From: Blepharisma stoltei ATCC 30299
Lineage: Eukaryota; Protista; Ciliophora
Length of the DNA: 64,000 nt
Assembly: GCA_965603825.1 (NCBI GenBank)
Contig: CBFDEM010000025.1
Coordinates: 62,001-126,000, forward strand
Reading direction: 5' to 3'
In this document: piece by piece, positions 1 to 53,813 of the stretch
Numbering within the stretch: the stretch's first letter is position 1
How the letters are laid out: each line of letters opens with the position of its first letter
Notes under the pieces: generated by a model
The model's input: only the letters and a program-made list of their open reading frames with translations
What the model was told of the DNA's origin: nothing
Database searches by the model: none
Translations under genes and position numbers: made by a program

Positions 1-356
1 CGAATTCATCTTTTGCGATGCTGGATTATGGAAGTGATGCTTCTGTTATTAATATTATTGAAGAAATACATGTGATTTGCTTCAAAACCCCAATGACTGG
101 AACTGAGTATTATCCGTACATAGCGAGGGTTAATGCAGTTCAAGATGAAATTTTAGCTGAATTTAAACTCGCTGATCACGATTCAAAAAATATTATAAAT
201 GATCAATTAACTCAGATAATGAATACTACTATAGTATACTCAGTAGCTGTGCTTGTATTATTTTTCTTTTACTATTGACCGTATTTTAACAATCAAAGGA
301 AGCAATTTGATAGGTTTTCAGTGCTTCCAACGATATTAATGATGGATCTTGAATAG
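1..356 (+). CDS. 3' end of PAS-domain multi-pass membrane protein (TmcB/TmcC-like), array copy A0, truncated by the window edge
   Basis: ORF 18..278 reads through TGA (YY-W-PYF, matching YYWPYF in copy A1) to TAG at 354-356. It is closely similar to the C-terminus of A1. Confidence 0.85.
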
Positions 357-3329
357 GTGAACATACATACTTATTTAATCATAATAGATTTTATTAATAT
401 ACAAATGATTAATTGCGGCTTTAAACAAGATAATAAGATATATTACATTAGAATTTTTAATTCTCTATAGAAGCTACTAAAATTTCAATTGGGACTGTAC
501 TTGATAAATTAAAAATATAAAATAAATTCAATCAAGAAATCACTTTAGCAAATAAAAGGCTAAAATCTGATTTTTCAATGAAGTTTATTTTAAATAGCTA
601 CTATTAAAAAATTAAATGCATATCTTATTAGAAATATCTAGTTTTATATAAAACTTTATCAAATAATGCTAAAAGTTTCAAATTTGCTATAATTAAGTCT
701 ATTATTTTTTATCAATTTGAATTTTAATAATTGAAACCATAATTTATGTCTAAAGCCTGAGAAAAAGAAAATACAACTTTTAAATTTCTACCAAAATCAC
801 AACTTTTTAAGTTGAAAATCTTTTTATATAGTATTTTGGCTCAGCTATTTGAGGTCCAATACAGTCATACATCTCCATACAAAAGGCAGCTGCTATATGA
901 AATTGTGATGAATAACATTTTAGCTTTACAAGTAATTTCGTTGAGCTGGTACCCAAATTTAAGCATCTCTGGATGGTCGAGCTACAAACCATTTTGAGAA
1001 ATTTTTGGTTACTTAAGCTATGACTCTATATGTGCAGAGCTAGGAATAATGAATTTCTGTTTCTATGGGACTATTTATTGATATGAGCTGAAGTTGGGTT
1101 TTTAGGTATTTTTGGGTATTATATATCAATAAATAAAAATCCACCTGAATCTGTAGCCCTTTTTCCAAGAAAGGTATCACTGTTTTTCACAACCATCGGA
1201 ATGATCCCAAGCTTTATGATAATACTGAATATTTTTAAGTATTCTATAATTGGATCGTCTTCAACAGAAGAATATAATGGAAATGCCAAAGGGAGCGATT
1301 TAAATTATAGTTACTTTGGGATTTTATTCCCTTTATTCTCTATTTTGATATTGCTTCTTTTCAATTTTTCTTTTGAAGTGTTCTCATGTGATATGCAGCA
1401 CACACACCACAAGAAAAACATAAAGGCAAGATGCTCTTCACAATTGAGCTTGCAAAATAGAGCTTTTTTCCTATTTATGTGTATTCTTTATGTCTCATGT
1501 GGAAAAGAAAATATTTTGGTATTACAAGTATCAGGCTTAATACTATCACTGTATCTGGTTATTAAAAATATATGAAGTTTACAGTATTTCAATAGCATTG
1601 AAAATAGTATTGAAATATTCAAAATTACTTCAATTTCATTGACCTTACTAATTTTTATTTTTGGCGAAGTCATGGATAATTCAGAGATTATCATGATTTT
1701 TAGTATAATTTTACAGCCAATTGCTGCCTATTTAATTGTAAAACTTGTGTTCCACAGATATAAAAAACTAAAAGAAAATAGTGAAATTCAAAAAACCAAT
1801 ACGAATTTGAAAGAAAATTCAGGCATATTCTGACTGGGGAAAATAAAGAAAATGATATAGGAATTTTAGATTTGTATCGGAGTTATTGAAATATGCCAGG
1901 ATTTATGAAAAATAAAATTTTTGCTATATGAGAATTTAATGCTGTAATTTCAATAATAAAAGATGAAAGATTGGCAAGAGTAAAATTTTCAAAAATTACT
2001 AAAGCAGATTTTTCAATAGAAGGCGATATTCAAGAATGAAAAATAAATAAATATTTTACAAGTGGAAAATGCAAGAATTTTCCAGATACAAGCTTTTTAA
2101 AATTTTTACAAAAATTCAGTAAAGTGAGGTTTAGGGATGAAGGGATTTGCGATACGCTGATAAAATTATATACTGAATTTAGCTCGAGAAAGCCAAGAAT
2201 TTCAGTATTGATGAATTTAGTTGACGAGACAGGAAAAAGTCTTGATGAAGTAATGGATGGGTATAAAAAGTTAATTGAAATACATAAAAACGTTGAATGC
2301 TATGATAATTATGCGAGTTTTCTAGAAAATATAGTAAATGATGCAGAAGAGGCAAATTTGATACACAGAAAAAGGAATGTATTGAATATTAATAATGCCA
2401 GAAACGACTATCAAAACTTAGAAAATTATGGCAAAGATGTCGGGATTTTGCTAATTTTATGCTCAGATGAAGCTTTTGGAACAATTGTCTATATTAACGA
2501 AAAGGCTTCACAGATTTTAAAAGTTTCCACAGCAAATGCTAATGGAATTTCTCTGTCAAACTTCATCCCTCATACTTATGGCAACTTACATGAGAAATTA
2601 ATGAAAAATCTTGTAGAAGAATGTAAAAATGTAGATATTTCTTCTCATAAAACTCAATGTTTTGTGACAAGTGATGGATTTTTAGTAGAGAGTTATGTCA
2701 TGATTAAATTGACTGTATTTCACAATTCTCTTTATTTTTTAGCATCAGTTAAGCCTCGATCGGCAACTAATAGAGAAGTTGCTATAATTTCTGAAGAAAA
2801 CGTGATTATAAATCACTTAGAACTATTTAGCCATTACTTAAATAACGATACCAAAGACCTTAAAAGTTCCCTTCTTTCTGATATTATTCCCCTTAATATT
2901 GCAGAAATGCAAGATTATAAGCCATGGATTATCAAATTCAACGAAAAACCTCTTGCTTTTGTGCGTATCAAAAAAGCAATAAAATCGGTATCATTTTATT
3001 GCTTGCTTATGATTCATAATGATAATGAAATTCATGAATGGGAAATAGGGAATAATGAAGACCAAGAAGAATTCCTTGGAAGCGCTTATCGAAAAGAAAT
3101 AGCTGAAAAAGCCTTATTAAAACACAAATTTAGTGAAATTATTGAATATACGCCAAAAGAAATTGATTATTTAATTAGCAGCAAAGAAAATGGAGAAATT
3201 CAATTAGAAAATACCTCAAAGCCTTCTACATCAAAAAGCAGCAGAAGCATTTATTCAAGCCACTCAAAGCAGCTGCTCTTAAAATCAAAGCAAAAAGTAA
3301 GGGTTCTCCAATGAGTTTTATTTATTGTG

Positions 3330-3344
3330 GTAAAAAATATTTAG
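3330..3344 (+). other. 15-nt spliceosomal intron (A1 intron 1)
   Basis: gtaaaaaatatttag. Removal restores WVLFIV|ILSVI, as in the intronless copy A2. Confidence 0.9.
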
Positions 3345-3734
3345 ATACTTTCCGTGATCATTACAATGATAGGGATTTTAAATTATATAATAGGAGACGT
3401 TTCCCATACCTCAAAAATGAGTTCCTTAGGAGACCTTGGCAAGCTTTTATATAACTTAGAAGCTGTAACAGACTCTATTAGAACTTTAGAAAAACAAATT
3501 AAAAGCAATTCTACCCAGGCTCAGAAGGATAGTAACACAAAGGTTTTTCTTGACCTTTTAGACGATTTAGACATAATTCGTGCGAATCTTTTAGGCGATT
3601 TTGATGAATGGAGCTTCTGTAATAGCGCTGAAATAATATCAAGACCTATTATACCTTTATGGAATTTTGAAAAAGAAAGACCGAAAATCGATTATAGTAA
3701 CCTTTATAACACACTCAGTAAATTTATATCAAAT

Positions 3735-3749
3735 GTAATCGTTATTTAG
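3735..3749 (+). other. 15-nt intron (A1 intron 2)
   Basis: gtaatcgttatttag. Removal gives KFISN|GK, matching the intronless RFIIN-GH of A3. Confidence 0.9.
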
Positions 3750-5144
3750 GGGAAAAATATGATTACTGAGATAGCCTTAAAACAAAACTATTCTGCAAAT
3801 TCGAAGTTTTTATTTTTGAATGGAATTAGTAATGGTTTTGATTATTCAAATAAAACAGCCAATGAAATCATTAATTGTGAAATAAGCAGAGTTTTGCTGA
3901 CAGGGACAAATATATATGCACTTATCATCGTAGGAATGTTTATGCTTGTACTTCTTATCCTAGTGATCTGTGGATTCGCAGCACTAGTGTCTCGGACTTG
4001 TGACGATTTTTGGAATTTTTTGCTAAATAAAGGACAAATCTCAATGGCAAGGCTTAAATCTGCCTCGCTTGACAGATTAATGGTAGTGCATGGCATTGAT
4101 TATAATATTGAAGCACCCTCTGAATCAATCAAAAATAACCGTTTTGTCCATAAAGTTAAGTCAAATTTATATATGAAATTCATGTGGAGAATTTTTATAT
4201 TTTTTTTAATTGCAGCTTCTTACTACTGTTTAATATGCTTTCACATGTACCCAAGCTGCGAAACAATGATGATAAAACGCCCGAAACTTTTAAACAATTT
4301 TAATGCAAAAAGAGCTTTAATTTTTAGACTCAGCATTTTCGCAAGGGAATGCATGAGTCCTTATATGGTCTCAAATTTTCAAAATTCATATGATTTTCCT
4401 AATCCAAAAACAATGCTAAATAAAACATATGACCTTTTAAAGCTGAGAATAAAAGAGCTAAAAGACGAAAATTTTTCGATTTTAATGTCTGAAGAACTAT
4501 TAGACAGAATTTATAAGACCGCTAATTCCTCTAATGAGCTATTAAAATATGGAAGTGATGCTTCAGCTTTTGGAATCACAGACGAAATCTATAGTATTTC
4601 ATATAAAACTTCAGTAAGTTCAGCTGAGTATTATCCTTATATTGCAAGAATCAATGCTGTCAATAATGAAATTTTATATGAATTTTCACTTGCTGATCGT
4701 GATTCAAAAAATATTATTAGTAATCAATTGAATGCTATAATAAATATTACGATAATATACTCTATAGCAGTTTGTGTGCTATTTTTTGTCTATTATTGGC
4801 CTTATTTCAGCTATAAAGTAAAGCAATTTAATAGACTTTCAGTGCTTACAACTATATTGGTGATGGAATCTGAATAAAAATCAGGCTAATAGATTATTAA
4901 ATTAATAATATCTTTAATAATTAAATGCTTTTTAACCCTGCAACCATGGCCTCACCATAATTTCGAAAAAGAGGATTTTGCTCTTTTACCATAAGTTAAA
5001 AATTATACACCATTTTGTATATGAAGAAATCCCTGAGCAGCACATGAAACTTCGATAAAAGTCTCTATGAAAGCATCTGATAAAAAAAAGCGACAAAAAT
5101 AAAAGAAACCGATTTATTACAAGCAAAGAGCTGCCAGACTTAAC

Positions 5145-10377: not shown

Positions 10378-13300
10378 ATGCTTGCTATCCAGGAAGAAAT
10401 GGACTCAAACCATAAAGCAAATAAAGATAATGATCGATTTTTATCCCAGACTCTATTTTCCAACAAATTTAAGAGCTATTTTTTTGGCTTTTTTGGGCAC
10501 CTTTTTAAGATGAAATATAGCAGAAAAACAAAGTTTCAAGTCCAAGTCGTATATGAAATTACCCTTAGCATTATAGTAGTATTACAATTGACGTCACTTA
10601 CCTGGCACCCAAAAATGAATATAACTAATTGGGAATCTTACATGGATTTTTGGCAGTATATAGGATTTCTAAGCTATGACGAAATATGTGCCGAAGCTCA
10701 CAGTATGAATTTTTGCTTTTATGGCACACTTTCATTGATTGGAATTTGCTATGTCACTTTTGCAATTTTTGGAGTTTCTATTTATGCAGACAAAGAAATC
10801 TCAGCACGTTTTACAGTTGTAACTAGAAAAATTGCTTTACTACTAACAACTGTTTGCTTTATCCCAAGTACAATGATTTTTTTATTAGTTATTAAATATT
10901 CAATTGTAAATACTAATGATATTACAGAGTATAGTGGGTCTACAAAGGCAAGTGAATTAAATTATGGGCCAGCTGGTTTTATATTTGGGATTGTTTTTTT
11001 ATTTTCCTTAGTATTTATAAATTTATCTTGTGAGAGTTTCTGCTGCGATGTCAAGCATTCTCATCAGAAATACAATATAAAATCAAGATCCAGCGTAAAT
11101 CTTGACCTGCATAGAAGAATTTTTTATGTTTTTATGTGTATTTCTTATATCATTTTTGCTGGCTATAATATATATATTCATCAAGTTATAGTATCTGTAT
11201 ATTCTTTTTATCTTGCTCTACAAGGAATATTGAGTTTGAACTATTATAATTCTATACAAAATTCAATTGCAGCTTGGAAAATAGCTTCAGTAATGACAAG
11301 TGCTATAATTTTTTTATTCGGGCAAATAATAGATAACCCTGCTGTCATAATTCTTTTTAATATTTTTGCGCAACCGTTAGTTTTACTCATAGTTATTCGA
11401 TTAGTGCAACTTTATACCAAACATCTTCCAAATTTTGCTTCAAACCCTAAGAATCAGTTTGAATTTGAAAGAAAATATCGACATTTGCTTACAAATGAAA
11501 ATCTCGCTGAAAAATCTAAAGTTTTAACTCATTTTAAAAATTTTGCAAAATTAAGCACTTTTGAAAAGAACAAGCTTTTTGTTATTTGAGAATTCAATTT
11601 TTGTGTATTCGTGGTAAAAGATGAAAGACTAGCAAGAATTAAACTCGCTAAAATAAAACAGTTTAAATCCTCATTTGAAGGAGAAGTTCAAGAATGGAGA
11701 ATTTTTTGTTGGCTCATTATGAGAAAATGCAAGATCTTTCCTGACACCAATTATTTAGAATATTTGAAAGAATTTAACAGGATTAAAAATCAGGACGAAA
11801 CCTTATGCCACATGATAGTTGAGCTGCAATCTGAATTTTCTTCATCATCGCCAAGAATTGATAAAATTATAAATTTCGTGAAGCGGACTTCTAACTTAGT
11901 CAAAGCAATCCAAAAAGGCTATAAAAACTTGGTAAATAAATATAAAAACCCAGAATCCTACGATATATATTCAACGTATCTTGAAAATATAATCAATAAT
12001 AAAGAAGAAGCTGAATTAATTATAAGGAGAAAAGCCGGGCTTAATGTATATAGCAAAAAATCTGAGCAGTCTTTGGAACAGTATGGCAAAAATACTGCAA
12101 TTATGCTTTTAGCTTGCTCAGCCCATTCATTTGGAAAAATTCTATATTTAAATGAAAAAACTACCAAAATTTTGAAAATTTCTGGCTCAGGCTCTTATGA
12201 GACATTTTTAATGAATTTTATACCACAACCTTATGATGCGCTTCATGATAAGCTTATGAGGGAATTTGTGAAAAATTGTGACACAATTGATGTCCAAGGC
12301 CATGATAATTTATATCTCAAAGACCAGCTTGGATTTTTGATAGAGTGCAATATACTGATAAAATTGACTGCTTTTCACAACTGCCTTTATTTTTTGATTT
12401 CATTTAATAAAATAATTACTAATAAGCAAGCTGCGGTTATTTCTGATGAAGGGTTTATTACATGCCATTCTGAGCATTTTCCTTATTACTTAAAATCAGA
12501 AGAAAAATACCTAAATAACAAAAAATTGTCTGATTTATTGCCAAACTTAAATTTTGAAAATCTCCAAGAAAATGAGCTTTTTGTATGCCAAGAAGGCACT
12601 ATGACCAGAAAAACTTTATCAATATCAGACAAAACTATTAATTTTTTAATAATTATTCCCAATGAAAATGATATAAAAAATAGTCCTGAAAACCAAACTG
12701 ATCATTCCGAAATAAGAGACACCACATGTGAAAATACCCAAGATTTAAGCATTTTTAGTAGCCACCTTGACAGGAAATTGCAGCAAACAAATTATTCTTC
12801 TTCTATTAGATCAATTGACAACTCATTTATTAAAGGCATGTCTAAAGATGACAAATTCCATGAAGAAAAATCTATGTCTTTTGAGAGGGCAAGAGCATTG
12901 TCCACAAAATCAAGTATTTTTTATATAGATTACGCTAAAAAATTGCTTTCAGAATCAAGAATAAGAATAAAGGTACTACAATGGGTGCTTTTTATTGCAA
13001 TTTTGTCAGTTATAGGGACAGTAGCTGCGATATTAGGATATATGGTAAGTGACGTGTCTTATTCTACATCAATGAGCTCATTTAAATTGATAGGAGATTT
13101 ATTATATAATCTTGGATCTGCATCTGATATGGCAAGAACTATGGATCGAATGATATTTATGAACGTCTCAAAGCCATTATTAGTAAACCATATGCATTTA
13201 TATGAAAACCTCATTGCTGAGCTGGAAAATATAGAAAATCATATTCTAGGGGATTTTTCACAATGGAGCTACTGCTCTGCGGCTGACATACTTCATGATT

Positions 13301-14544
13301 CTTTAGTTCCTTTGTGGTCTTTTGAAGAAATGCCCCCAAAAATTTCATATGCAAACTTGTATAACACAATAGGAAAATTCATTTTTCATGTAATTTATAT
13401 ACAGGGAAAAAGCTTAATAGCAAATATTAATAATAAACAAGACTATAAGGGCAATTCAAAGTTTTTAGTCATGAATGGACTAGATTTTGCTTATGAGTAT
13501 ACAGATATTGCTATGAAAGGAATAAAAAAATGCGAAATAGTTCGGGTAAAAAGCAATGGATCTATTATAAGAGCATTATTGATTCTTGGATTTTGTGCGC
13601 TTATATTTCTTGAATTTATTATTATTGGGTTTATCATACTTGTGTCAATAAAACATGATGAATTTTGAAATTTTTTGTTAAATAATGCTCAGCTCTCATT
13701 ATCCAAGCTTAAATTTTCTTCAGTTGAAAGGTTAATGACTATTCATGGAGTTAATTATAATTCTGATATGAAGATGGAAAGAGAAAAATTTTTGAATAAA
13801 AATAGAAAAGTTAAAACGTTTTTGTACATAAAATACTCATGAAGGATAATGATATTTTTTACAATAGCTGCATCTTATTACTTATTAATTGGTACATTTT
13901 TATACCCAAACTGTGAGAAATCGATGACAAATAGGCCCGAACTTTTGAGTAATTTTAACCTAAGACGATCATTGCTATCAAGATTAAGCATATTTTCCAG
14001 AGATATCTATCAGCCCTATATCATTTTAAATTTCCCATCCAACTATAGTTTTGCCAATTCCTACGCCATGCTATATAAAACTCTAGATGACTTAAACTTA
14101 TTAAATAAAGAAATCCGTCAAAATAAATTTTCAAGCCTAATGTCCCAAGAATTGATGGACAGTCTCTTTGAAAAATCTAACTCGAGCCTGCCAGTGCTGC
14201 ACTATGGCACTGAATCATCAATTAATACAATCGTATGAGATCTAGAAAATTTAGCTGCCAGAACCACCCTTCAGCCAGGCGATGTAACAGTTGCTTTTTT
14301 AAGCCAAGTCACACAAATCCAAAACGAAATTGGGTATGAATTTGGGCTTGTTGACGATGATTCTAAAGAAATTATAAATAATCAATTGAATATCATTATA
14401 GAAGTGACAGCGCTTTATTCAGCTTCTCTTTGTGTATTATATTTTTTGTATTATTTACCATATTTGAACGGCCAAATCAAACTACTGAAAAAATTTGCAA
14501 TTTTACCTACAATTTTGCCTATGAACGCAGGGCAGGTGTATTAA
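10378..14544 (+). CDS. Array copy A2, TmcB/TmcC-like PAS-domain multi-pass membrane protein (~1383 aa)
   Basis: Single frame with TGA=Trp at 11587, 13666, ~13840 and 14236. It has an N-terminal multi-TM block, a helical region, a PAS-like segment (GKILYLNEK...FIPQPYDALHDKLM) and a C-terminal TM/extracellular module. Ends at TAA 14544. Confidence 0.85.
13390..13404 (+). other. 15-nt intron without an in-frame stop (A2, intron 2 position)
   Basis: gtaatttatatacag at the same site as intron 2 of A1 and A6-A8. It reads VIYIQ if retained. Confidence 0.8.
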
Positions 14545-14643
14545 TTGCTGATAGCTTAAATAATTATTTTTAAATTTTTATGAAGTAATTAAAACTATGC
14601 AATTAATGTAAAATAAAATATTAAATAAAATATTTCCACAAAT

Positions 14644-17600
14644 ATGTTTGAAGTAGATGAATTAGCAGAAAAACGCAGTTATGAATTTAGAGGACTTTTA
14701 AAAGGAATGAATTTTGCGACTAGGCTGAATCATTGCATATTAAACTTTTTTGGTAAAATTTTCAGAATAAAATACAACAGAAAGACTTCAATTAAAACTC
14801 AGATGGCCTACGAAATAACTATTAACATTATAATTGTGCTGCAATTGAGCAGCTTAGTGTGATATCCAGATTTAAAGATTTCTGACTGAAGTTCATACCA
14901 ACCTATATGGCTTTTTCTTAGCTACTCAAGCTACGATAGCATTTGTGCACAGTCTTATATCATGAATTTCTGTTTTTATGGGACTTCATCTTTATTTGGG
15001 CTTTGCTTGGCTTTTTTAGCAATTTTTAGGATTTTTCTGAAAATCGAGAAGCCGATACCAATATTTCTTATAATAATTTTTGAAAAATTTATATGAATAA
15101 TGATGACTTTATGCTTCATTCCCAATGTGATGATTTTATTAATGACTCTTAAATATTCAATTATAGCTTCAGAAACAATTGAAGAATATTCTGGAGATAT
15201 AAAAAGTGACAGCTTAAATTACGGCTTAGTTGGGATTTTTATTGTGATTAGCTGTTTTTGCATTTTAGCTCCTATTACTATTTATTCTGAAATTTTAGCT
15301 GTGATATAAAACATACAAATTCCAGCAGAAATGTAAAAGCGAGAACTTGTGCTGAATTAGACTTTGAAAAAAAGATTTTTTATGTAATTATGTGCATATT
15401 TTATGTAACTTTAGGAAATGGTAATGTCATCCTTCTTGAAATACTATCATTGATTTATACGGTTTATATTATGATAAAATGCATAGTATTTCTGCCTTAT
15501 TACAATATTTTTGAAAATTGTATAGAGTCTTGCAAAATGGCTGCAGTTTCTTTAAGTATACTGATATTTCTTTTTGCGAATTTGCTGGATAATGCGACGG
15601 TTATAGCGCATTTTAATATAATTTTGCAGCCAATTGCAATATATATGGTGTGTAGAATTATTAAGCGTAGATACTTAAAATTAAAAGAATGCAAAGATAT
15701 CCCAAAAAATCAGTATGAATTTGAGCTAAAATACCGGGATTTATTAACAAATCCGAATTTAGAAGACAAAACACAAGTATTAAGCCTTTTTAAAAGATTT
15801 TCTGAAATGTGCCATTTCCAAAAAAACAAGCTTTTTGCCATATGAGAATTCAATTTCTGCTTTCATGTAATCAAAGACGAAAGACTTGCTCGAGTAAAAC
15901 TTTCAAAAATTTCAAAAAATTCTTCATCTCTCGAAGGAGATGCCTATGAATGAAAAATTTTTAATTGGCTCTGTGCTAATAAAAAGTTGATATTTTTTTC
16001 AGACATCAATTATTTAACGTATTTAATGGAGTTAAGCAGTGTGAGGGCAAAAGACGAAGAATTGTGCTATATTGTAATTGATTTAGAGGGTGAATTTTCA
16101 CAGAGAAAGCCAAGAATTGAGAGAATTGTTGATTTAGTTGACCATATTTCTGACAGTATTGGGATTATAAAAAAAGGATATAAAAATATTGCTGAAAAGC
16201 ACAAAACAACAGAAACACTTGAGCTATATGCAGGATTTCTTGGTGACATCCTAGGCAATTATGATGAAGCTGACCAAATTGCTAGTAAAAAAAATGGGAT
16301 GAGTGTATATAATCAAAGAAATGAAGACAAAAGATTAGAAAAATATGGCAGAGATATAGCTACAATGCTTATTTCTTGCTCAGATGAATCTTTTGGCAAC
16401 ATTCTTTACATTAACGAAAAGGCCATCCAAATTTTAAAAACCTCATTAATTCCTTCCCAAGAGCTGAAATTTACAAATTTTCTTCCAGCCCCATATGATG
16501 TTTTGCATTTAAAGCTTGCAAAAGATTTTCTTACAAATTGCAGTTCAACGGACTTAGAAGACCATAAGAGGCTATTCTTTGAAGATCAGAGAGGCTACAT
16601 CATGGAGTGTAATTTATTAATAAAATTGACCGCATTTCACGACTCTGCCTATTTTTTAGTATCTTTTCAACAGAAAAAAAAAGATCATCAACTAGCTATT
16701 GTTTCACAAGAAGGCATAATACAGTCCCACACAGAATTATTTCCTTACTACGTAGGCCAAGAAAAAAAGCTATTAAAAAATAAAAACCTATCAGATTTAA
16801 TCCCAGCCCTTTCTATAGAAAAAATGCAAGACTACGAGCCTTGGATCACTATATGGGAAACCCGAGAACTTGCCTTTATAAAAATCCCTAAAAAAATAAA
16901 ATCTATTGTGGTATATTTATTAATCGTGGCCTACAATGAAGAAGAAATTAGTAAATGGAAAACTGGGGAAGCCCAAGAACAGCTGGATATGATAAGTGAT
17001 CAAGATGTGGAAAATAATGAAGAAAGCTATTCAGACAAAAGAGAAAGAAAAAGGGCTGAAATTAAATGCCATTCGATAGGGGAAGTCACTTTTTCAATGA
17101 AATCTATTGATAAAACTGAAACTGATATTTTTACACAAAATATGGACAGCTCTATGATGAAAGACCAAAAAGAGCACGAAAGGTCGCTTGACGAAGAACA
17201 TTCTAAGCCTACTTTATCAAAAAAAAGTAACTTTTATTAAGATTTTGCAAAAAGGCTCTTAATAGAGTCAAAAAGAACTATAAGAGTTTTACAATGGGTG
17301 TTATTTTTTGTGGTAAATTTAATATAGATATTATCAGGCATAACAACAGTCATAGCAATAGCTGCATATATGGTGGTCGATGTGTCACATTCTACGTCAA
17401 TGAGCGCTTTTAATCGTATGGGGCAGCTTCTCTATGACATTGGCTTATGTTCAGACTGAGCCCGGTCAATTAACAGGGTTGCAGACACATTCTGGCTATC
17501 CTTAAATTCATCACATTCTTCATCTTCATTAAAATCTTCTTTACAATCAAATGTAAACAGCATGGCCACTGTCATTGAAGACCTAGAAAACGTCCAAAGC

Positions 17601-25179: not shown

Positions 25180-25456
25180 GGGATTTATAATTTCTAAAAC
25201 GCTTAAAATAAATTTCTAAAATTATGCTTTATTTAACCCTACTATTTATTATTGTATATAATATCAAAATGTCTTTATTTTAAAATAATCTAAATACTCA
25301 TAGTTTTACCTGTACAATTTTTAGAAAAATGTATTTGATTTTAAGATAGAGACATTGTTTCAATCTAATAAATAATTGATGCTCCAACTCCTATAATATT
25401 AAAAAATTAATCATTTTAAAAGCTGCTTTTATAAAATACGAATGTTTTATAAAAAT

Positions 25457-30649: not shown

Positions 30650-33600
30650 ATGCTTGACGAACAGCTATTAGGTATCAACGAAAGCTCTGATTTCCAAGGT
30701 TTCTTGACAAAACCACTATTTCAAAGCCGAATAAAACGATACACATTTGGATTTTTCAGTAAACTTTTTAAGCTAAAATATAGTCACAAGATTAAGCTAA
30801 AAACTCAGCTTGTAATAGAAATTGTGACAAATTTGGTTTTGATGTTACAATTAATATCATTGACTTGATACCCTAATTATGAAGTTTCTGAGTGGGAGTC
30901 ATATGCAACGTTTTGGAAAATTCTTGGTATTGTAAGTTATGACGAGCTTTGCTTTGAATATGGAACTGAAGATATTTGTTTTTTTGGAACTATTGGACTG
31001 ATAGGGTCCTGCATTATCTGTTTTATAATTTTTGGAGTTTATGTATATATAGAAAAAGAGCCGCCAAATATTATCACAAATTTGCCTAGAAAAATCAGCA
31101 TGCCGCTGACTTCAATTTGTTTTATTCCAAGTCTGATGATTTTACTGATGGTTTTTAAATATTCAGTTATAGCCAGTGGAGAAGTGACTGAATACGACAA
31201 TTCTACACGAGATTCCTTGGATTATGGCGCAGCTGGAGGGGTCATTTCTATTATTTTAATTATTTTTCTCTTGCAGATTAAGTTCTTTTCAGAAATTTTT
31301 TCATGTGATATTCGGCATTCTCGATCAAATGAAAATATAAAAGCAAGATGTTGCTCAGAAGCAGATTTTAATAGATTTATTTTTTACATAGCTACTTGTA
31401 TATTGTATGTATCTCTTGGGGACTACCAAATTGAGTACCAAATTATTTCATTTGTGGCTTCTTCTTATGTTTTTATACAGACTCTAAGGTATTTGCCTTA
31501 TTACAATTTTATTGAAAATTCAATCCAAGCAGTCAAGTTGTCGGCGATTTCAGGATTTTTATTAATTTTTTTATTTGGGGAGCTTTTAGATAATTCTCTT
31601 ATTATTTTGTGAATGAATATATTTATCCAACCTTTGATATTTTTTTTTGTTATAAAAATTGTCAGACATTTATATAAAAATCTTCCCCAAAGAACTTCTG
31701 ATATAAGAAACCAGTTTGATTTTGAAAAAAAATTCCGTCATTTATTAGTCGATAAATCACTTGTCGACAAGCGATATGTCCTGGATTTATTTGCAAAATT
31801 TTCTAAAGGAAAACAGTTCAGTAAATCAAAATTATTTGTTATATGGGAATTCAACTTCTGTCTTTCTATTATAAAAGATGAACGGCTAGCTAGGGTAAAA
31901 TTAGCAAAAATAGCAGAAATTCCTTCTTCTTTAGAAGGGGATGCTCAGGAATGAAGGCTATTTAATTGGCTTATCGGCAGGAAATGCCACATATATCCTG
32001 ATACAAATTATTTGGAATATTTAACTGAGCTTAACAAGGTAAAAACCAAAGATGAAGAGCTTTGCTTAATTTTGGTTGAATTAAGATCAGAACTTTCTTC
32101 TAGGACCCCAAGGCTCCCTAAACTTATAAATTTAGCTAACAGAATCCACGACAATGTAGATAATATAAAAAAAGAATATAAAAGTATTATTGAAAAATAC
32201 AAAAATATTGACGCTTTTGAGCTCTATGGGAGCTTTTTAGAAAATATTATGAAAAATCATGAGGAAGCTTTAATAGTCAACAGAAAAAAACATGGAATAA
32301 ATCTGTATAATATGAGGGGAGAGGATAAAAAATTAGAAAGATATGGCAGGGAAAACGCTATTGTTTTAATTTCAGCATCAAATGTATCGTTTGGATCTAT
32401 TGTCTACATAAATGAAAAAGCTGCACAGATTTTGAAAACTCCTGCCACAGATACTTGTGGGATGCCTTTTAATAATTTTATTGCTCCCCCTTATAATATA
32501 CTTCATGATACCTGCATGAAAAGATTTGTTTTAAATAATCATAGCATTGATATTCCTTATCATAAAAGTCTTCCTCTTATGACACAGCATGGCAATCTTC
32601 GTGAATGCAATATTCTAATAAAATTGACTGCTTTTCATAGTCATGCATATTTTTTGGTATCATTTAGGGAAAAAAACACCAGTCGAGAAATAGCAGTAAT
32701 TTCCCCGGATGGGCACATTTATTGTCATACTGAATTTTTCACTATCTGCATTAACTCAGCAGGCCAAAACGTAAGAGGCAAGCACATTTCAGATCTTTTC
32801 CCAATGCTCGATTTTTATAACATGGAGCCTTTTGAGCCTTGAATAATTTCTTTTGAAAACAAACAAATAGCAGTTATCCACACAATAAAACAAATGAGTG
32901 CATATACCCTGCATTTTATTATATTAGTCCACGATGAAAAAGAAATAGAAAAATGAAAAGACGGCCAAGACCCAGACCAGATTGAATATTACGGAAACTC
33001 CACAATTATTGACGAAAATGACGAGCCTTCACAAATTTTTGTTGAAAAAAAATATGAAAGAAAAGCTTCAAAAGTTCGGCTTCATACAGTCAATCAGTAT
33101 ATGACGTCTATTACGAAATCTTTTGACAAAGAAAACTCAGAAATTCCTACACAAATTAGTAATTTTGTAGCTGAAAGCCGAGATTTAGAAACTTTTGACG
33201 ATAAATCAGGGGCGACAAGCTGCAATGAAAGCAGCCAGTCTTCGACAAAAGCGAGTAATTTTTATTTAGAGTTTGCTCAAAGGCTAATAGTTGCTTCAAA
33301 AAAAAAATTAAAAATTCTTCAATTGGTTCTGTTTGTTACAGTAAATGTAAAATAGATTTTGACTGTCATTGCGACAGTTATAGCGATTTTATCTTATATG
33401 ATTGTTGACGTTAATAGAACAACATCTTTGACTATTTTTACACACTTAGGTCAGTTGTTATATGACTTAAGCGTTTCTAATGATTTAGCAAGAACTTTGC
33501 ATAGAGAAATTGAATTAGGAAATTATCTTCAAACTAAACGCTTAGATGACGTAAGAGCCCTAGTTACTGATTTACAGAATGTTCAAGACTATATTTTTAC

Positions 33601-34900
33601 AGAATATGACCAATGAAGCTATTGTTCTAATTCAGAATTTGTAAAAAAAGATGTTATACCTATGTGAAATTTTGACAAAAGCCAACCAGTTATGACAAAA
33701 TCCAATCTTTATGACGCTGTTGACAAATTCATACTTAACGTAATTACTATATAGTGGGAAAACTTAATTTCTGCGGTCACTAAAAATGAGACCTTTATAA
33801 AATACATAAAATTTATTGTTATGAATAGTGCTGATTTCTCTTATGAATATTCCAACATCGCTATGTCAGGACTTGTCGATTGCGAAGTAGAAAGAGTAAA
33901 TTCCTTTGGAACAAATATAAAAATCCTTCTTGTAGCTGGTCTCGTGCTTTTAGCACTTTTTGTATCAATAATAATCGGCTATATTGTAATGGCTAGCAAA
34001 TCATATGATAATTTTTGGAATTTCATGTTCAATAACTCACAAGTGTCTTTAATACAATTAAAAAGAGAAGCAATAGACCGATTATTTGCATTTCACGGCA
34101 TTGATTATCACTCAGAAAACATTGAAAACGACCAAAGAGCTCATAAGCACTCAAAAATAAAAACAGACATAAATAAAAAATATATATGAAGGCTTATGAT
34201 TTTTTTCGTAATTGCAGCTTCTTATTATTTATTGACGTATTTTTATTTATATGTGCAATGTGAAACGTCGATGATGAACAGACCTAAATTATTGAGCAAT
34301 ATTAATTTAAAAAGGGCACTGCTTTCGAGAATTGGATTTTTTGCGAGAGATACGTATTCTCCTTATCTTATTCGAATTTTCCCAAAGCTGTATGAATTTT
34401 CTTCATCGAGAAAAATTTTTGAAAGAAGTGTTGCTTTATATAATGAAAAAGACAAAGAATTTAGAAAAAAAAAATATAAAAAATTAATGTCAAAAAATTT
34501 ATTGAGACAAATTTATGAAACTTCAGATTCATCTATTCCTAAGTTGCATTATGGAGCTAGAACAGGGGCAGATTTTACTATTTTTGAAGCTTATTATATT
34601 TCATCACAAAAATCTATAGAATCATCATATATGCCAACATTTATAAACCTTACAAGAGAAGTCCAAAATGAAATTGGGGCTCAGTTTTTAGAATTAGACA
34701 AAAACTCAAAGGATGTTATAAATAGTCAGCTTAATGATATTATTTTGTGTACAGTTAGCTATTCTATAGCTCTGTGTATTTTATTTTTCTGCTATTATTT
34801 GCCGTATTTGAATAATGAAAGCAAGCAGTTTACCAAGTTATTGATTTTGCCGACACTTTTGCCGATGGAAGAAGATAAAAGAATGAAGCCTGCTGGCTAA
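30650..34900 (+). CDS. Array copy A6, TmcB-like PAS membrane protein (~1406 aa)
   Basis: One frame with TGA=Trp. Introns at 33341-33355 and 33740-33754. Confidence 0.85.
33341..33355 (+). other. 15-nt intron (A6 intron 1)
   Basis: gtaaatgtaaaatag. Confidence 0.9.
33740..33754 (+). other. 15-nt intron (A6 intron 2)
   Basis: gtaattactatatag. Confidence 0.9.
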
Positions 34901-35263: not shown

Positions 35264-38200
35264 ATGTTTGAAGAACAATTATTAGAAATCCATGAAAATT
35301 CTGGGATCCAAGGCTTTCTCACAAAGCCTCTTTTTGAAAGCAGACTTAAACTTTACACATTTGGTTTTTTTGGGAAACTGTTTAAACTTAAATATAGTCG
35401 CAAAATAAAACAAAGGCACCAATTTACATTGGAGACAACAGTAAATTTAATTTTGATGCTCCAGCTGATATCTTTGACTTGATACCCAAATTATAAAATT
35501 TCTGGATGAGAATCATATTCATTATTTTGAAAAATCTTAGGGATCGTAAGTTATGATGAGCTTTGTTTTGAGTATGGTGCCCAAGATATTTGTTTTTATG
35601 GTACAATAGGGCTTATTGGAACTTGCATAATTTGTTTTGTAGTTTTTGGGGTTTTTATATATATCAAAAAAGAGCCACCTGGCATCATAACAGCCTTGCC
35701 AAGGAAAATTACTATGGCGCTAACCACAATTTGTTTTATTCCAAGCCAAATAATAATGCTCATGGTTTTTAAATATTCAGTTGCTACAAAAAGAGAAGTT
35801 ATTGAGTATGAAAATTCAACAAGAAGCCAGCTTGACTATGGCGCTGCTGGAGGAATGGTATCAATTATTTTGTGTATTTTTCTACTATTAATTAAGTTTT
35901 TTTCTGAAATTTTTTCATGTGATGTCAGGCATTCTCGATCAAAAGAAAATATAAAAGCAAGATGCTGCTCTGATGCTGATTTGAATAGATTTGCTTTTTA
36001 TGCTTTAAATTGCTTATTATATGTATCGCTAGGGGATTATCAAATTGAGTACCAAATAATTTCATTTTCTATTTCAACCTATGTCTTTTTCCAGACCTTA
36101 AATTATTTACCTTATTATAATTTTATAGAAAATTCTATTCAAGCAGTCAAATTATCAGCTATTTCTGGGTTTTTGTTAATTTTTTTATTTGGTGAACTCT
36201 TAGATAATTCGCTTATAATTTTGTGGATGAATATTTTTATACAGCCTCTAATATTTTACTTTGTCATAAAAATAGTCAAGCATTTATATAAAAACCTCAA
36301 TAAAGAAGCCACTGAAATAAAAAATCAATATGAGTTTGAAAGAAAATTCCGCCATTTATTAGTCGACAAAGCACTTATTGATAAAAGTCATGTCTTAGAT
36401 TTATTCGCAAAATTTTCTAAAGGAAAACAATTTTATAGGTCAAAATTATTTGTTGTTTGGGAATTTAATTTTTGTCTGTATATTATTAAAGATGAAAGAC
36501 TGGCGAGAGTAAAATTGGCGAAAATAGGAGAAATTCCTTCTACTTTTGAAGGAGACGCACAAGAGTGGAGACTTTTTAATTGGCTGATTGATAAAAAGTG
36601 CTCAAATTTTCCAGATACGAATTATTTGGAATATTTAACTGAACTCAACAGAGTTAAAACCAAAGATGAAGAACTTTGTTGTATTTTAGTCGAATTAAAA
36701 GCTGAATTTTCTTCAAAAGTCCCACGACTTCTGAAATTACTGAACTTAGCAAATCAAATTCATTGTCATATTGAAGAAATTAAAGAAGAATACAAAAATA
36801 TTGTAGAAAAATACAAAAATATTGACGCTTTTGAGCTTTATGGGAGTTTTTTAGAAAATATTTTAAAAGACCATGAAGAAGCTTTGATGGTAAACAGAAA
36901 AAAGCATGGGATTAATTTGTTTAATATGCGTGGAGAAGACAAAAAATTAGAAAAATATGGCAAAGAAAATGCAACACTTTTAATTTCAGCTTCAAATACT
37001 ACATTTGGCAGCATTGTATTTTTAAATGAAAAAGCTGCTCAAATTTTAAAAACATCAATAAATGATGCTTGCGGATTACCTTTTACGAATTTTATCCCTC
37101 CGCCGTATAATGGTACTCATGAAAAGTCAATGAAAAAATATTTTTTTAACTGCCAAAATATTGATATACCTTTTCACAAAAGTCTTCCTTTTCTTACTAG
37201 AAATGGCTATATAAAAGAGTGCAATATTTTAGTTAAATTGACAGCTTTTCACAATCATGCTTATTTTTTGTTATCATTTAAAGAAAAATATTCAAGTAGA
37301 GAGGTCGCATTGATTTCGGAAGATGGGCGGATTTACTGCCATTCAGAATTTTTTACATTTTTGATTGGAATCGAAGCTCCAGATGTAAGGAATAAATATA
37401 TTTCTGAACTGCTACCAATGCTTGATTTTTATAATATGGAGCCTTTTGAGCCATGATTGCTTCCTTTTGAAGGCAAAGAGCTAGCAGTCATCCACACAGT
37501 TCGAAAGATGAACTCAATTACTCTGCACTTTCTATTATTAGTCCATGACGAAAAAGAAGTAAAAAGATGAAAAGAAGGCCAGGATTTTGACCAAATCGAG
37601 TTTTTTGGAAATTCCACCATAATTGATGACTATGATGAGCCCTCACAAATTATGGAAAAAAGATTAATAAGGCAAGCTTCAAAAGTCAGGCTCCACACCG
37701 TTAGCCAATATATTACATCAGTTTCTAAATCTACTATTAAAGAAGAATCAGAAATGCCAACAACACAATTAACGATTTTGGCTGCAGAAAGCCGAGAATT
37801 AGAAACTTTCGACGAAAAATCAGGGGCCACAAGCAACAATGAGTCCCACAAGCTTTCAGCTAAAGCAAGTAATTTTTATATAGGGCATGCCCAGAGACTT
37901 ATAATTTCTTCAAAAATGAAAATAAGGTTTCTCCAATTGGTATTATTTTTTACTGTAAAAAAAAATTAGATTTTATCTGTAATTATTGGAGTCATTGCAA
38001 TTTTATCATATATGGTAATTGACGTATCCCATACGACACCACTAACAATTTTTACCCATCTTGGCCAATTATTATATGATTTAAGCATTTCTTCTGATTT
38101 AGCAAGAATATTACACAAAGAAATAGTCCTTGGGCTATACAAACAAACAAATCGCTTAGCTGATGTCCAAGCTTTAATTACCGATTTGCGTAGTGTCCAA

Positions 38201-39523
38201 GAATTTATTTTTTCTGACTATGACCAATGAAGTTACTGCTCTAGCTCAGAAGTTGTCATGAAACCTATAATCCCAGCATGGAATTTAGACAAAGATCAGC
38301 CTGAGCTCATAAAAGAAAATCTTTATAATATCGTCGACAAATTTATTTTAAATGTAACCAAAAATTAGTGAGAAAATTTAATCGTAGCAGTCAATAGAAA
38401 TGAAAGCTATATAAAATTCGTAAAATATATCGTCATAAATAGTGTCGATTTTTCCTATGAATATGCAAATTTAACTATGAAAGGACTAGTTGACTGTGAA
38501 ATTGAGAGGGTGAATTCTTTTGGAACAAATATAAAGGCTCTTTTAATATGCGGAATGTGAGTCCTTGTAGGGTTTTTTGCAATTATAATTGGATATGTAA
38601 TAATGGCTGACAGGTCATATAATGCTTTTTGGAATTTTATGTTGAATAACTCGCAGGTGTCATTAATACAATTAAAAAGAGAAGCAATTGATAGGCTGTT
38701 TTCTTATCATGGGATTGACTATAAATCAGAAATTTTAGAAAACGATCAAAAGAATATGCATAAACACTCGAAAATAAAAACTGGCCTTAATAGGAAATAT
38801 ATATTAAAAGTCATGATTTTTGTGGTGATTGCATTGTCTTACTATTTTTTAATGTACTGTTACTTATATGCAGAGTGTGAAAATTCGATGATAAAAAGAC
38901 CAAAATTATTAAGCAATTTTAACATAAGAAGAGCTTTATTAGCTCGTATAAGTTTTTTCGCAAAAGATATATACACGCCTTATTTATACCAAAATTTCAA
39001 GGATCTTTATGGGTTTTCTAATTCTTATACGATGCTTTCTACTAGCATTGCCTTGCTTGATGAAAAAATGGACGAAATGCAGAAGGAAAAATACCAAAAT
39101 TTAATGTCTAATAAATTATTAGACAGAATATATGAAAAAATAGATTCTAGTGTTCGAGGTTTAGATTATGGATCGGCAGCTGCAAATCATGCAGCTCTTT
39201 TCGATGCTCGGTATATAACCAAAATGTTTCCTCCAAATAATACTTTTATGATCATATATATCAATTTTATACATAAGATTGAAGACGAAATCGGATCACA
39301 ATTTATCCTGGTTGATGAAAATTCGAAGGATTTAATAAATAGTCAGCTTGCAAATATCATTATATGCACAGTTTGCTACTCAATTGCTTTATGCTTTTTA
39401 TTTTTCTTTTATTATTTCCCATATTTAAATAATGAAATCAGGCAATTCTCAAGACTATTAGTTTTGCCGCTACTGTTGCCGATGGAGGAGAGTAAAAGGA
39501 TGCAAATTGGGAAAGATAAATAG
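35264..39523 (+). CDS. Array copy A7, TmcB-like PAS membrane protein (~1409 aa)
   Basis: ATG at 35264 (MFEEQLLEI, homologous to A6 and A8). Introns at 37955-37969 and 38354-38368. Confidence 0.85.
37955..37969 (+). other. 15-nt intron (A7 intron 1)
   Basis: gtaaaaaaaaattag. Confidence 0.9.
38354..38368 (+). other. 15-nt intron (A7 intron 2)
   Basis: gtaaccaaaaattag, followed by TGA where A6 has TGG. Confidence 0.9.
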
Positions 39524-40282: not shown

Positions 40283-43200
40283 ATGTTTGAAGACCAGCTA
40301 TTAGAAATCAATGAAACCTCTGAGATCCAAGGATTCTTAACTAAGCCAATATTTGAAAGCCGATTAAAATGTTATACCTTTGGGTTTTTTTCGAAACTTT
40401 TTAAGCTTAAATATAGTCACAAAATCAAGATAAATCATCAGCTTTTAGTCGAAATCGTAACAAACTTAATTTTGATGCTGCAGCTTATATCATTGACTTG
40501 ATACCCTAATTTTGAAGTTTCTGAATGAGAATCGTATTCTTTATATTGGAAAATGATTGGGCTGGCTAGTTATGATGAGCTTTGTTTTGAGTATGGAGCA
40601 CAAGATATTTGTTTTTATGGCACAATAGGGCTTATTGGAACTTGTATTGTTTGCTTCATAGTATTTGGAGTTTTTATATATATTGAAAAAGAGCCGCCTA
40701 ATATAGTCACAAATTTACCAAGGAAAATCAGCATGCCACTTACAACAGTCTGCTTTATTCCAAGCTTAATGATAATGCTTATGGTTTTTAAATATTCTAT
40801 TCTAACAAGGAAAGAAGTAATCGAATATGACAACTCCACACGAGATTCGCTTGACTATGGGGTTTTTGGTGGAATAGTATCTATTATTTTACTTATTTTT
40901 CTGCTATTAATTAAATTTTTTTCTGAAATATTTTCATGTGACGTGAGGCATTCAAGATCTAAAGAAAATCTTAAAGCAAGATGCTGCGCTGAAATTGATT
41001 TGACGAGGTTTGGGTTTTACGTTTTGAACTGTTTTCTATATGTATCGCTTGGGGATTATCAAACTGAATATCAAATTATTTCGTTTATTATTTCTTTTTA
41101 TATTTTGATAATTACACTCAAATTCTTGCCTTATTATAATTTTATAGAAAATTCAATCCAAGCCATAAAACTATCATCAATTTCTGGAATTTTATTAATT
41201 TTCTTATTTGGTGAACTTTTAGACAACTCGCTAATTATTTTATGAATGAATATTTTTTTCCAGCCTTTGATACTCGCTTTTGTCGTAAAATATGTCCTCC
41301 ACTTATACAGGACCCTTCACAAAAGAAGCAACGACATAAGAAATCAATTCGATTTTGAAAAAAAATTCCGCCATTTATTAGTCGACAAAAATCTTCAAGA
41401 CACAAATTATGTCCTTGATTTATTTGCAAAATTTTCTAAAGGAAAACAGTTTGGAAAATCAAAATTATTTGTGATTTGGGAATTTAATTTTTGTTTGTAT
41501 ATTATTAAAGATGAAAGACTGGCAAGAGTAAAATTAGCGAAAATAGGAGAAATTCCTTCTACTTTTGAAGGAGATGCCCAAGAGTGGAGATTATTTAATT
41601 GATTAATTGAGAGAAAATGCCAAAATTTTCCAGATACTAATTATTTGGAATATTTAACTGAACTTAGCAAAGTTAAAACCAAAGATGAAGAGCTTTGCTG
41701 CATTTTGGTAGAATTAAGAGCTGAATTCTCTTCAAGAACGCCAAAGCTTCCTAAACTTTTACACTTGGCTCATCAAAGCTACGATTATATTACTGAAATC
41801 AAAAAAGAATATAAAAGTATCGTTGAAAAATACAAAAATATTGAAGCTTTTGAGCTTTATGGAAGCTTTTTAGACAATATTCTAAGAAATCACGAAGAAG
41901 CATTAATTATTAATAGAAAAAAGCATGGGATTAATTTATATAACCTCCACTCAGAAGACAAAAAGCTTGAAAGATATGGCAAAGATATCGCAACAATCCT
42001 AATTTCTGCATCAAACACATCTCTAGGAGCCATAGTATATCTAAATGAAAAAGCTGCCCAAATTTTAAAAACTTCAGTAACTGACGCATTTGGAACTTCT
42101 TTTAATAATTTTATTATTCCTCCATACAATATATTGCATGAAGAATATTTAAAAAATTATTTTTTGCATTGCCATAGTATTGATATCCCTTATCACAAAA
42201 ATCTTCCTCTTTTGACTCTGCAAGGCCATCTCCGCGAGTGCAATATCCTGATAAAACTAACAGCTTTTCACAATCACGCTTATTTTTTATTATCATTCAA
42301 AGAAAAAATTTCAAGCCGAGAAATCGCATTAATTTCTGAAGATGGGCTAATTTATTGTCATTCAGAATTTTTCACATTGTGGGTTGACTCAGAGGTCTCA
42401 AGCGTTAGGAATAAATATATATCAAATTTATTCCCAATGCTTGACTTTAACCGTATGGAGCCTTTTGAGCCATGACTAGTCCCTTTCGAAGACAGAGAAG
42501 TGGCTATTATCCATACAATAAAGCATATGAATTCCCTTACCCTTCATTTTATTATGATTGTTCATGACGAAAAAGAAATAGAAAGGTGAAAAGACGGCCA
42601 AGACCCTGACCAGATTGAATTTTATGGAAATTCTACCATTATTGATGATACTGAAGAACCATCACAAATTATTGAAAAAAAATTAATGAGGAAACCTTCT
42701 AGGGTCAGGCACCATACAGTTAATCAATTTATAACGTCTTTATCCAAGTCTCTAAAAGAAGACTCAGAAATGCCGACACAAATCAGCAATTTTGTAGGAG
42801 AAAGCCGAGAACTTGATACTTTTGATGAAAAATCAGGCGCCACAAGTGTCAATGAAATTAACCAACTTTCGACTAGAGCACGTAATTTTTATATAGGACA
42901 CGCCCAAAGGTTAATAATATCTTCAAAGCTGAGAATAAGAGTCCTTCAATATGTGCTATTTTTTACTGTAAAAAATAATTTAGATTTTATCAGTCATTGT
43001 TACAGTTATCGCGATTTTATCTTATATGATCACTGATGTGTCCCATACAACTTCTCTGTCAATTTTTACCCATTTAGGACAATTATTATACGATTTAAGT
43101 GTTTCTTCAGACTTAGCCAGGGTTTTGCATAGAGAAGTGCAAGGGGGAGTTTATAAGCAAACACATCGTCTAGAAGAAGCCCAAGAAATGGCTGACGATT

Positions 43201-44537
43201 TAATGAGTGTCCAAAATTATATTTTTACTGATTATGACCAGTGGAATTACTGCTCTAGCTCAGAAATTGTGAGAAATCCGATCATACCAATGTGGTCTTT
43301 TGATAAAACACCTCCTGAAATAACTAAAGAAAATCTTTATAATGTGGTCGATAAGTTTATTTTCAACGTAATTGAAATTTAGTGACAAAACTTAATTTTG
43401 GCTGTTAATAAAAGTGAGGATTTTATAAAATATGTGAAGTTTATTATTATAAATAGTGCAGATTTTTCTTATGAGTATTCCAATTTGACTATGAAAGGGC
43501 TGGTGGATTGCGAAATTGACAGAGTAAATACATTTGGGACAAATATTGGGGTGCTCCTGGTTAGTGGGGTATGCATTTTAGCGCTTTTTGTGACTGTTAT
43601 AATTGGGTATATAGTGATGGCTAGTAAGTCTTATGATGATTTTTGGAATTTTATGCTGAATAACTCACAAGTGTCGTTAATAAAATTAAAACGAGAGGCA
43701 ATTGATAGACTTTTTGCGTGTCATGGGATTGATTTCAGCTCAGAAAACATAGAAAATGACCTAAGAAATATCCATAAAAGCACAAGAATAAAAACAGATA
43801 TCAATAAAAAATATATATGAAGGTTATTGATTTTTTTTGCAATAGCTGCGTCTTATTATCTTGTTGTGTATTTTTATTATCAAAAATGTGAAAGATCTAT
43901 GATTCACCGTCCAAAATTGCTAAGCAATTTTAACATAAGAAGAGCTCTACTTACTCGAGTCGGATTTTTTGCAAGAGATTTGATGATTCCTTATCTATCT
44001 CAAACTTTTCCAACTTTATATGAGTTTCCTAATTCTAACGTGATGTTTCAACAATCTATTGCGTTAATTAATGAAAAAAGCAGAGAATTGAGAAGCCAGA
44101 AATATGAAGATATAATGTCAAAAAAATTAATGAAGCAGATTTATGAGAGTTTGGATTCGAATTTTACTGGTTTGCATTATGGGACTGCAACAGCTTCAAG
44201 CTCTGCAATTTTTGACTCTTATAATATTTCTAAGCAAAAAACTGTGGATTATTTAGACATATCTAGATACGTAGATTATATTCGCGCTATACAAGCAGAA
44301 ATAGGATCTGAATTTCTTCTCGTCGACCAAAATTCAAAGGATTTAATAAACAGTCAACTAGACAATATTATTATATGTACAGTAACTTATTCAATTGCTT
44401 TATGCCTTTTATTTTTCTTTTATTATTTTCCATACTTAAATAATGAAAGAAAAAGGTTTACAAAATTATTAATTTTGCCAGTTCTTTTGCCTATGGATGA
44501 TCATAAAAAAATTAACTCTGAAGATAATAAATTATAA
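40283..44537 (+). CDS. Array copy A8, TmcB-like PAS membrane protein (~1407 aa)
   Basis: TGA=Trp. The 16-nt intron at 42968-42983 explains the frame change between the 42686 and 43026 ORFs. A 15-nt intron lies at 43368-43382. Confidence 0.85.
42968..42983 (+). other. 16-nt intron (A8 intron 1)
   Basis: gtaaaaaataatttag at the conserved site; removal restores the frame. Confidence 0.9.
43368..43382 (+). other. 15-nt intron (A8 intron 2)
   Basis: gtaattgaaatttag. Confidence 0.9.
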
Positions 44538-53785: not shown

Positions 53786-53813
53786 CTCTAAGATGTTTAA
53801 ATAATTTTCTAAG

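Follow-up and report, generated by a model that had tools for sequence, protein, structure and literature searches.

The 64,000-nucleotide window analysed here, positions 62,001 to 126,000 of contig CBFDEM010000025.1 (C25) of the ciliate Blepharisma stoltei ATCC 30299, carries a tandem array of nine same-strand (+) paralogs, c0 to c8, that extends over C25 ~58.2-106.5 kb and whose first member is truncated at the window start. The array arose as a lineage-specific expansion of TmcB/TmcC-family membrane proteins through birth-and-death duplication, and we consider that these proteins may act as catalytically silent receptors with two inputs, a gas and an external ligand, a reading to which we give a probability of roughly 55%. 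By modelling, their predicted layout consists of eight transmembrane (TM) helices, a TPR-like region, two successive PAS domains and a linker, followed by a TM-bundle-TM-TM-bundle-TM module.

Family membership and genome-wide expansion

Long open reading frames (ORFs) are seen in this window (GC content 26-38%) only when UGA is read as Trp and UAA/UAG as stops, and the residual breaks are 15-16-nt GT..AG introns, of which each copy has two to three at three conserved positions, each position being intronless in some copies. The standard code and a UAR=Gln code were ruled out, as both fragment the ORFs. After splicing, c0, c2 and c4-c8 are uninterrupted ORFs of 1,383-1,404 aa. The initial annotation, made from the window alone, had described nine same-strand paralogs sharing one layout, and this is borne out: seven of the nine are intact, the copies show the WEFN..KDERLAR and EG..QEW motifs, two PAS domains, a linker and four C-terminal TM helices, and the predicted protein end some 25 residues past the last TM helix corresponds to a measured tail of 23-33 aa after the last TM motif.

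The TmcB/TmcC-type identity that had been proposed for these proteins also holds, as PF25474 (TPR_TmcB) scores above its curated cut-off of 27 bits in the window copies tested (c1 30.8, c2 35.9, c7 36.4, c6 40.1). A PAS domain lies directly after the TPR region (weak Pfam matches in the window copies, clear in structure models), and the N-terminal multi-TM block and C-terminal four-TM module are colinear with those of other TmcB/TmcC members. Scanning the 41.46-Mb genome (64 contigs) for PF25474 returned at least 149 loci, a lower bound with 150 of 162 candidates scored, mostly clustered on C17, C4, C35, C32, C46 and C25, and all nine C25 copies were recovered by the genome scan or by protein search. 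The subfamily of the window includes ~37 copies within 190 kb of C17, where our analysis comprised 23 loci (21 intact, two without a full model). Close protein matches of the array genes all come from Blepharisma stoltei (the word search of proteins was limited to entries of 330-1,050 aa), and a single pattern scan of metagenome contigs, an insensitive method, found no relatives of the window subfamily.

Pairwise identity among the nine copies ranges from 38 to 76%, and four subclades are apparent (c0/c1, c2, c3/c4/c5 and c6/c7/c8). The tree of 30 full models places c2 next to a C17 copy, and the window subclades are not mutual closest relatives; it indicates an old radiation across two loci, followed by local duplications. 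The genome-wide clusters and this tree together support the birth-and-death expansion put forward initially.

Outside the array, chytrid fungi possess many TmcB-family members, and a few Blepharisma copies (on C57, C30 and C36) are strongly conserved, being 45-70% identical to Stentor and metagenomic proteins. These conserved "founder" genes lie at 448 kb and 544 kb of C30, 528 kb of C57 and 469 kb of C36, the one on C57 being a 1,675-aa ORF, intron-free and UGA-free, that is ~69% identical to Stentor over the first 640 query residues. They are the best candidates for biochemistry.

The cytosolic half and its FixL-like PAS domain

The AlphaFold2 model of the public c6 protein (P0003:15-790; 48-row alignment; predicted local distance difference test, pLDDT, 84.7; predicted template modelling score, pTM, 0.81) resolves into eight long helices of the membrane block, a helical/TPR region and a pair of PAS folds, which map to c6 as follows.

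30797..31678 (+), N-terminal membrane block; modelled by AlphaFold2 as eight long helices, without a Pfam match
32006..32275 (+), TPR_TmcB (PF25474); 40.1 bits, cut-off 27
32345..32674 (+), PAS1; FixL/DosP-like heme-PAS fold in the model
32504-32506 (+), PAS1 His619 codon, proximal His; present in 30/30 paralogs
32561-32563 (+), PAS1 His638 codon, second conserved His
32681..32935 (+), PAS2; shorter, fast-evolving second PAS fold

Both folds, the PAS-like domain and the probable degenerate second PAS of the initial annotation, are thus seen in the c6 model and in its Foldseek matches, the tandem-PAS proteins PpsR and DosP (E ~1e-6). The PAS call was right, but the FixL-type heme His within it had been overlooked. 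In VIA-align the heme-binding FixL and DosP outrank all other PAS domains (FixL: Z 12.4, root-mean-square deviation (rmsd) 1.4 A over 106 residues), and PAS1 of a conserved Blepharisma paralogue, P0010, matches FixL in sequence (E 6e-9) with the heme His aligned. The proximal His (His619 in c6) is kept in all 30 paralogs and in 46 of 47 aligned homologues.

A second His, 19 residues after the first, occurs in 29 of 30 copies of the window subfamily. In DosP the displaceable Met heme ligand sits close to this +19 position, and we infer by this analogy that PAS1 of the window subfamily may hold a bis-His heme. Chytrid members keep a FixL-type Arg one residue further on (His+20), in FixL structures the O2-stabilising Arg220. 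Heme ligation may differ elsewhere in the genome too: five copies seen in C4 (120-130 kb) and C35 (456-466 kb) have lost the proximal His and kept the layout, and a TmcB-family copy on C44 keeps it.

The outer half and its predicted helical bundles

The C-terminal module was modelled on the P0010 homologue (39 rows; pLDDT 81.7), with which the module of the window aligns end to end (HHalign 99.6%, E 4e-23). In the P0010 model both loops are four-helix bundles continuous with the flanking TM helices, and by homology the same is predicted for c6.

33404..33913 (+), c6 outer loop 1; four-helix bundle predicted from the P0010 homologue model
34253..34729 (+), c6 outer loop 2; four-helix bundle predicted from the P0010 homologue model

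The TM-loop-TM-TM-loop-TM layout suggested at the outset is borne out by the model, and what had escaped notice is the bundle fold of the two loops. Ahead of the first and the third TM helix of the module there are ~5 Lys/Arg residues, against 1-2 behind it, a positive-inside asymmetry that fits both bundles facing outward. The top structural match to the P0010 module is the NIT domain of NasR, a tandem bundle (Z 17.3 across both loops, 274 residues, rmsd 4.6), followed by the periplasmic sensor domains of Adeh_2942 (Z 14.0), PcaY (13.5), PilJ (13.2), McpN (12.8) and NarQ (11.6), and its Atlas neighbours, with PilJ/4HB_MCP ranked first, include PilJ-domain kinases and chemoreceptors. No match to PF12729, PF13675, a NIT profile or a PDB sequence was found among the 39 homologues, and internal duplication of the two loops is only marginal at the sequence level (HHalign 0.8% and 12.7%).

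Selection on the two halves

TPR and PAS1 have a mean identity of 51-53%, the N-terminal TM block one of 45%, both loops 38-39%, PAS2 37% and the linker 21%. Over eight independent pairs, the ratio of domain nonsynonymous divergence (dN) to gene synonymous divergence (dS) was 0.13 for TPR, 0.14 for PAS1 and 0.16 for TM, compared with 0.25 and 0.27 for the loops, 0.24 for PAS2 and 0.35 for the linker; the bootstrap intervals of loops and core do not overlap. Maximum-likelihood codon models on a fixed tree gave dN/dS (omega) values of 0.17 for TPR, 0.17 for PAS1, 0.17-0.19 for TM, 0.22 and 0.22 for the loops and 0.22 for PAS2. Older pairs come close to synonymous saturation, and the omega estimates are domain-level. 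The outer loops evolve 1.3-2x faster than the cytosolic core. The expectation that the loops would be less conserved than the cytosolic motifs thus describes a real contrast, but a modest one, with PAS2 equally fast and omega far below 1. At a loop omega of 0.22-0.27 no positive selection is shown, and the divergence of the loops is best read as relaxed constraint. Domain shuffling between paralogs, also considered, is not seen, the nearest neighbours lying within subclades for every domain.

These values bear on the idea, half-suggested by the initial annotation, of a cell-recognition or anti-predator/pathogen surface repertoire under diversifying selection. The family is large and clustered, its loops are 38% identical against 51-53% for TPR and PAS1, and loop 2 of c6/c7/c8 is ~53% identical against 80% for TPR, all of which such a repertoire would explain. 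Yet omega does not reach 0.3 in either loop (the three youngest pairs give 0.46-0.55), nearest neighbours remain within subclades without domain shuffling, and the loop folds resemble those of small-molecule sensors; we therefore hold a surface repertoire to be unlikely.

Conversely, only the heme-PAS might matter, in which case the proteins would be single-input gas/redox sensors and the outer bundles drifting structural remnants of an ancestral receptor. At least 149 receptors are not needed for one gas, the loops are under purifying selection with invariant Trp/Cys/Asn positions, and the five C4/C35 copies devoid of the His still keep them. For these reasons we judge a single input rather improbable, even with a heme His invariant in 30/30 paralogs, loops that diverge no faster than PAS2 and a Dictyostelium tmcB that is slowly induced by hypoxia (PMC12750705), each of which it would accommodate.

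Absence of an output domain and proposed mechanism

Pfam searches, a cyclase scan and tail lengths revealed no catalytic domain in the window proteins and no downstream cyclase exon. The genome contains 85 cyclase domains, the smallest distance to any PF25474 locus checked being 28 kb; genome-wide, none of the at least 149 PF25474 loci is fused to a cyclase, PF00211 is not found near any of them, and the genome scan placed no cyclase domain on C17 or C35. Conserved ciliate members carry no domains other than TPR_TmcB and PAS, and neither do the chytrid members, save for one kinase fusion of uncertain gene model. The lack of catalytic output noted initially is hence confirmed, but it is not special to these copies: since all ciliate and nearly all chytrid relatives found share it, the output-less state is the family default.

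We postulate that PAS1 would bind heme via the proximal His and sense O2, NO, CO or redox state, the second His 19 residues on being a possible displaceable distal ligand in the window subfamily. Packed together, the two outer four-helix bundles could imitate a bacterial chemoreceptor dimer within a single chain (NIT-like) and bind small ligands from outside, their specificity shifting as the copies drift apart. The TM helices would relay the signal to the conserved TPR/PAS core in the cytosol, and this core may act in trans on a partner that probably belongs to cyclic-nucleotide signalling; in this connection a passage of PMC12750705 cites Dictyostelium tmcB as a regulator of cAMP signalling in macrocyst formation.

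Several observations weigh against such a two-input receptor. On the cytosolic side, c6 PAS1 returned no match in a sequence search of the PDB, and the FixL distal Arg (His+20) is replaced by a variable residue in the window copies. On the outer side, the loops were modelled on a paralogue of ~16-20% identity in place of a window copy, a Foldseek search with the C-terminal module gave no significant match, helical-bundle Z scores up to ~13 can be generic (de novo bundles score alike), and a loop omega of 0.22-0.27 resembles that of PAS2.

No partner would be needed if the N-terminal 8-TM block were itself the effector, with the PAS and ectodomain modules gating it as a channel or transporter. 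In favour of this, the model shows a well-folded block, which is also conserved (omega 0.16-0.19) and has no family match. Searches of the larger model (the block not being searched alone), however, gave no transporter/channel match, and in Trichomonas proteins with a comparable layout the output is a separate cyclase, so that we consider a built-in effector very improbable.

Comparison with known systems

With TmcB/TmcC (PF25474; Dictyostelium TmcB) the array proteins share PF25474, the adjacent PAS, the N-terminal TM block, four C-terminal TM helices and the absence of a catalytic domain, and they are colinear with conserved ciliate and chytrid members. As a fast-evolving Blepharisma subfamily, they differ from the conserved TmcB copies (~20% identity) in being ~250 aa shorter with a shorter C-terminal tail, and from chytrid members in having His at +19 in place of the chytrid His+20 Arg. 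FixL and DosP share the PAS1 fold and the F-helix proximal His, whereas the array proteins are without kinase or phosphodiesterase and without the distal Arg. A kinase-less arrangement may have a parallel in the Chlamydomonas FXL proteins, which, reportedly from work by Murthy and colleagues in 2012, are multi-TM, FixL-like proteins without a kinase whose PAS binds heme and O2. Bacterial 4HB/PilJ/NIT sensors (Tar/Tsr, PcaY, McpN, NarQ, NasR) have the TM-four-helix-bundle-TM arrangement that appears twice per chain in the P0010 model; the likeness is structural only, and the array modules are without a following signalling domain.

The transmembrane adenylyl cyclases (TMACs) of Trichomonas vaginalis, 1,450-1,700 aa in ~123 copies with pseudogenes (Cui et al. 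2010, PMC2914791), are alike in described layout, with 6-8 N-terminal TM helices, a conserved cytosolic domain and 4-6 TM helices around two extracellular domains, but they end in an active adenylyl cyclase, while the array proteins end 23-33 aa after the last TM helix, without a class III cyclase. Closest to home, the B. stoltei orthogroups OG0000018/OG0000052 are similar by description (large clusters, seven or more N-terminal TM helices, central PAS, eroding copies). These clusters were attributed to old segmental duplications, with eroding copies noted, in a description that names no family and gives neither a heme site nor an ectodomain fold nor an analysis of selection (Singh et al. 2023, PMC9942806 supplementary information). 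The array adds one more cluster to an expansion that is known, annotated and already published in brief, and is in itself no discovery.

Few of the receptors with which ciliates sense chemicals and oxygen have been identified, and hardly any mechanism has been assigned to the TmcB family. The receptor model offers direct tests, namely a 110-residue PAS with named His ligands and two soluble ectodomains. More tentatively, and with the odds against so broad a statement, the TmcB family might be a widespread eukaryotic receptor class made of bacterial-type parts (a pseudo-dimeric bundle sensor plus a heme-PAS) and expanded in Blepharisma to a chemosensory repertoire of 150 or more members, whose subfamilies would differ in heme ligation (His/Arg in chytrids, His/His here, no His in C4/C35). 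If this were true, the differing ligation would give both gas-gated and gas-independent receptors signalling to cyclases in trans.

Gene structure, frameshifts and annotation

The array on C25 comprises exactly nine genes, as the upstream sequence shows c0 to be the first copy; their window coordinates are given below.

1..356 (+), c0; 3' end of the first copy, start at C25:58175, 1,383 aa, 2 introns
746..4877 (+), c1; ~1,367 aa, introns 3330-3344 and 3735-3749, frameshifts near 1079 and 1789
10378..14544 (+), c2; intact, intron 13390-13404, probably also 12914-12928
14644..18875 (+), c3; ~1,400 aa, introns 17227-17241 and 17313-17327, one frameshift near 15296
20989..25179 (+), c4; intact, 1,386 aa, introns 23567-23581 and 23653-23667
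25442..29653 (+), c5; intact, ~1,390 aa, introns 28029-28043 and 28115-28129
30650..34900 (+), c6; intact, 1,401 aa, introns 33255-33269, 33341-33355 and 33740-33754
35264..39523 (+), c7; intact, 1,404 aa as in the public model, introns 37869-37883, 37955-37969 and 38354-38368
40283..44537 (+), c8; intact, 1,402 aa, introns 42882-42896, 42968-42983 (16 nt) and 43368-43382

Two single-base insertions (near 1079 and 1789) restore the frame of c1 and one (15296) that of c3. All three corresponding deletions fall in short homopolymer runs, that of c3 leaving a T run one short, and none is accompanied by in-frame stops; c1 and c3 are either young pseudogenes or assembly slips. An artefact of an internal eliminated sequence (IES) junction was ruled out for c3, given that the macronuclear-plus-IES (MAC+IES) assembly has no IES at 15296 (the check covers the c3 frameshift, the c1 sites lying outside its coverage).

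The same assembly places a 2,399-bp germline-limited IES inside c6 (L036 13093-15491, inserted at window position 33398) that contains Tc1/mariner pieces (DDE_3, HTH_Tnp_Tc3_2). Some 37 other IESs map to window positions 11010-37400, several with similar C-rich/G-rich ends. An unusual IES load was rejected, the density of ~1.3 per kb being presumably near the B. stoltei genome average.

It had been claimed that annotation misses the system through the genetic code, which is not supported: the public annotation uses the correct code, and the genes are in NCBI/UniRef as TmcB/PAS proteins. The models of c2 (1,378 aa, the length we obtain with both introns removed) and c7 (1,404 aa) are whole, c4, c5 and c6 are each split in two because the 15-nt intron inside the first TM helix of the C-terminal module is uncalled, and c3 is split in three. 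An identical code and matching intron sizes are given in the genome paper, whose annotation pipeline calls introns only from at least 10 spliced reads (Singh et al. 2023, PMC9942806). Given this rule, the introns called in c2, c5, c6 and c7, as inferred from protein lengths, imply that these copies are transcribed.

Integrity and expression are also where a mostly neutral history would show, with segmental and tandem copies redundant and many of them barely expressed and eroding. The frameshifts in c1 and c3, the two of 23 C17 loci without a full model, a decayed kinase inside the array, the several introns uncalled from RNA-seq and the eroding pseudogenes reported for such orthogroups (PMC9942806) all point that way. 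Older pairs, however, combine near-saturated synonymous divergence with an omega of 0.13-0.23, seven of the nine copies here and 21 of the 23 C17 loci remain intact, and even the frameshifted copies show intact-like dN and no in-frame stops, so that mostly neutral duplication strikes us as quite unlikely.

Neighbouring genes and other features of the window

Three unrelated antisense genes interrupt the array, at 5145-7856, ~8240-9170 and 19069-20253. The second of these (8240-9170, -), between c1 and c2, is a decayed Ser/Thr kinase gene with several frameshifts and stops, in which the activation-loop motif is still readable. The third (19069-20253, -) is an intronless 394-aa ORF, for which the public annotation has the same length; a Pfam search of its longest UGA-free piece gave no match. 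The AT-rich spacer between c5 and c6 contains a GC-richer island (30080-30310), probably a decayed gene remnant, that was without match in Rfam and tRNA scans. Downstream of the array and unrelated to it are a long ORF (50846-53821, -) with a weak match to a cyclic-nucleotide (cNMP)-binding domain and a pyruvate kinase-like gene (60725-62362, -) with both PK and PK_C above cut-off.

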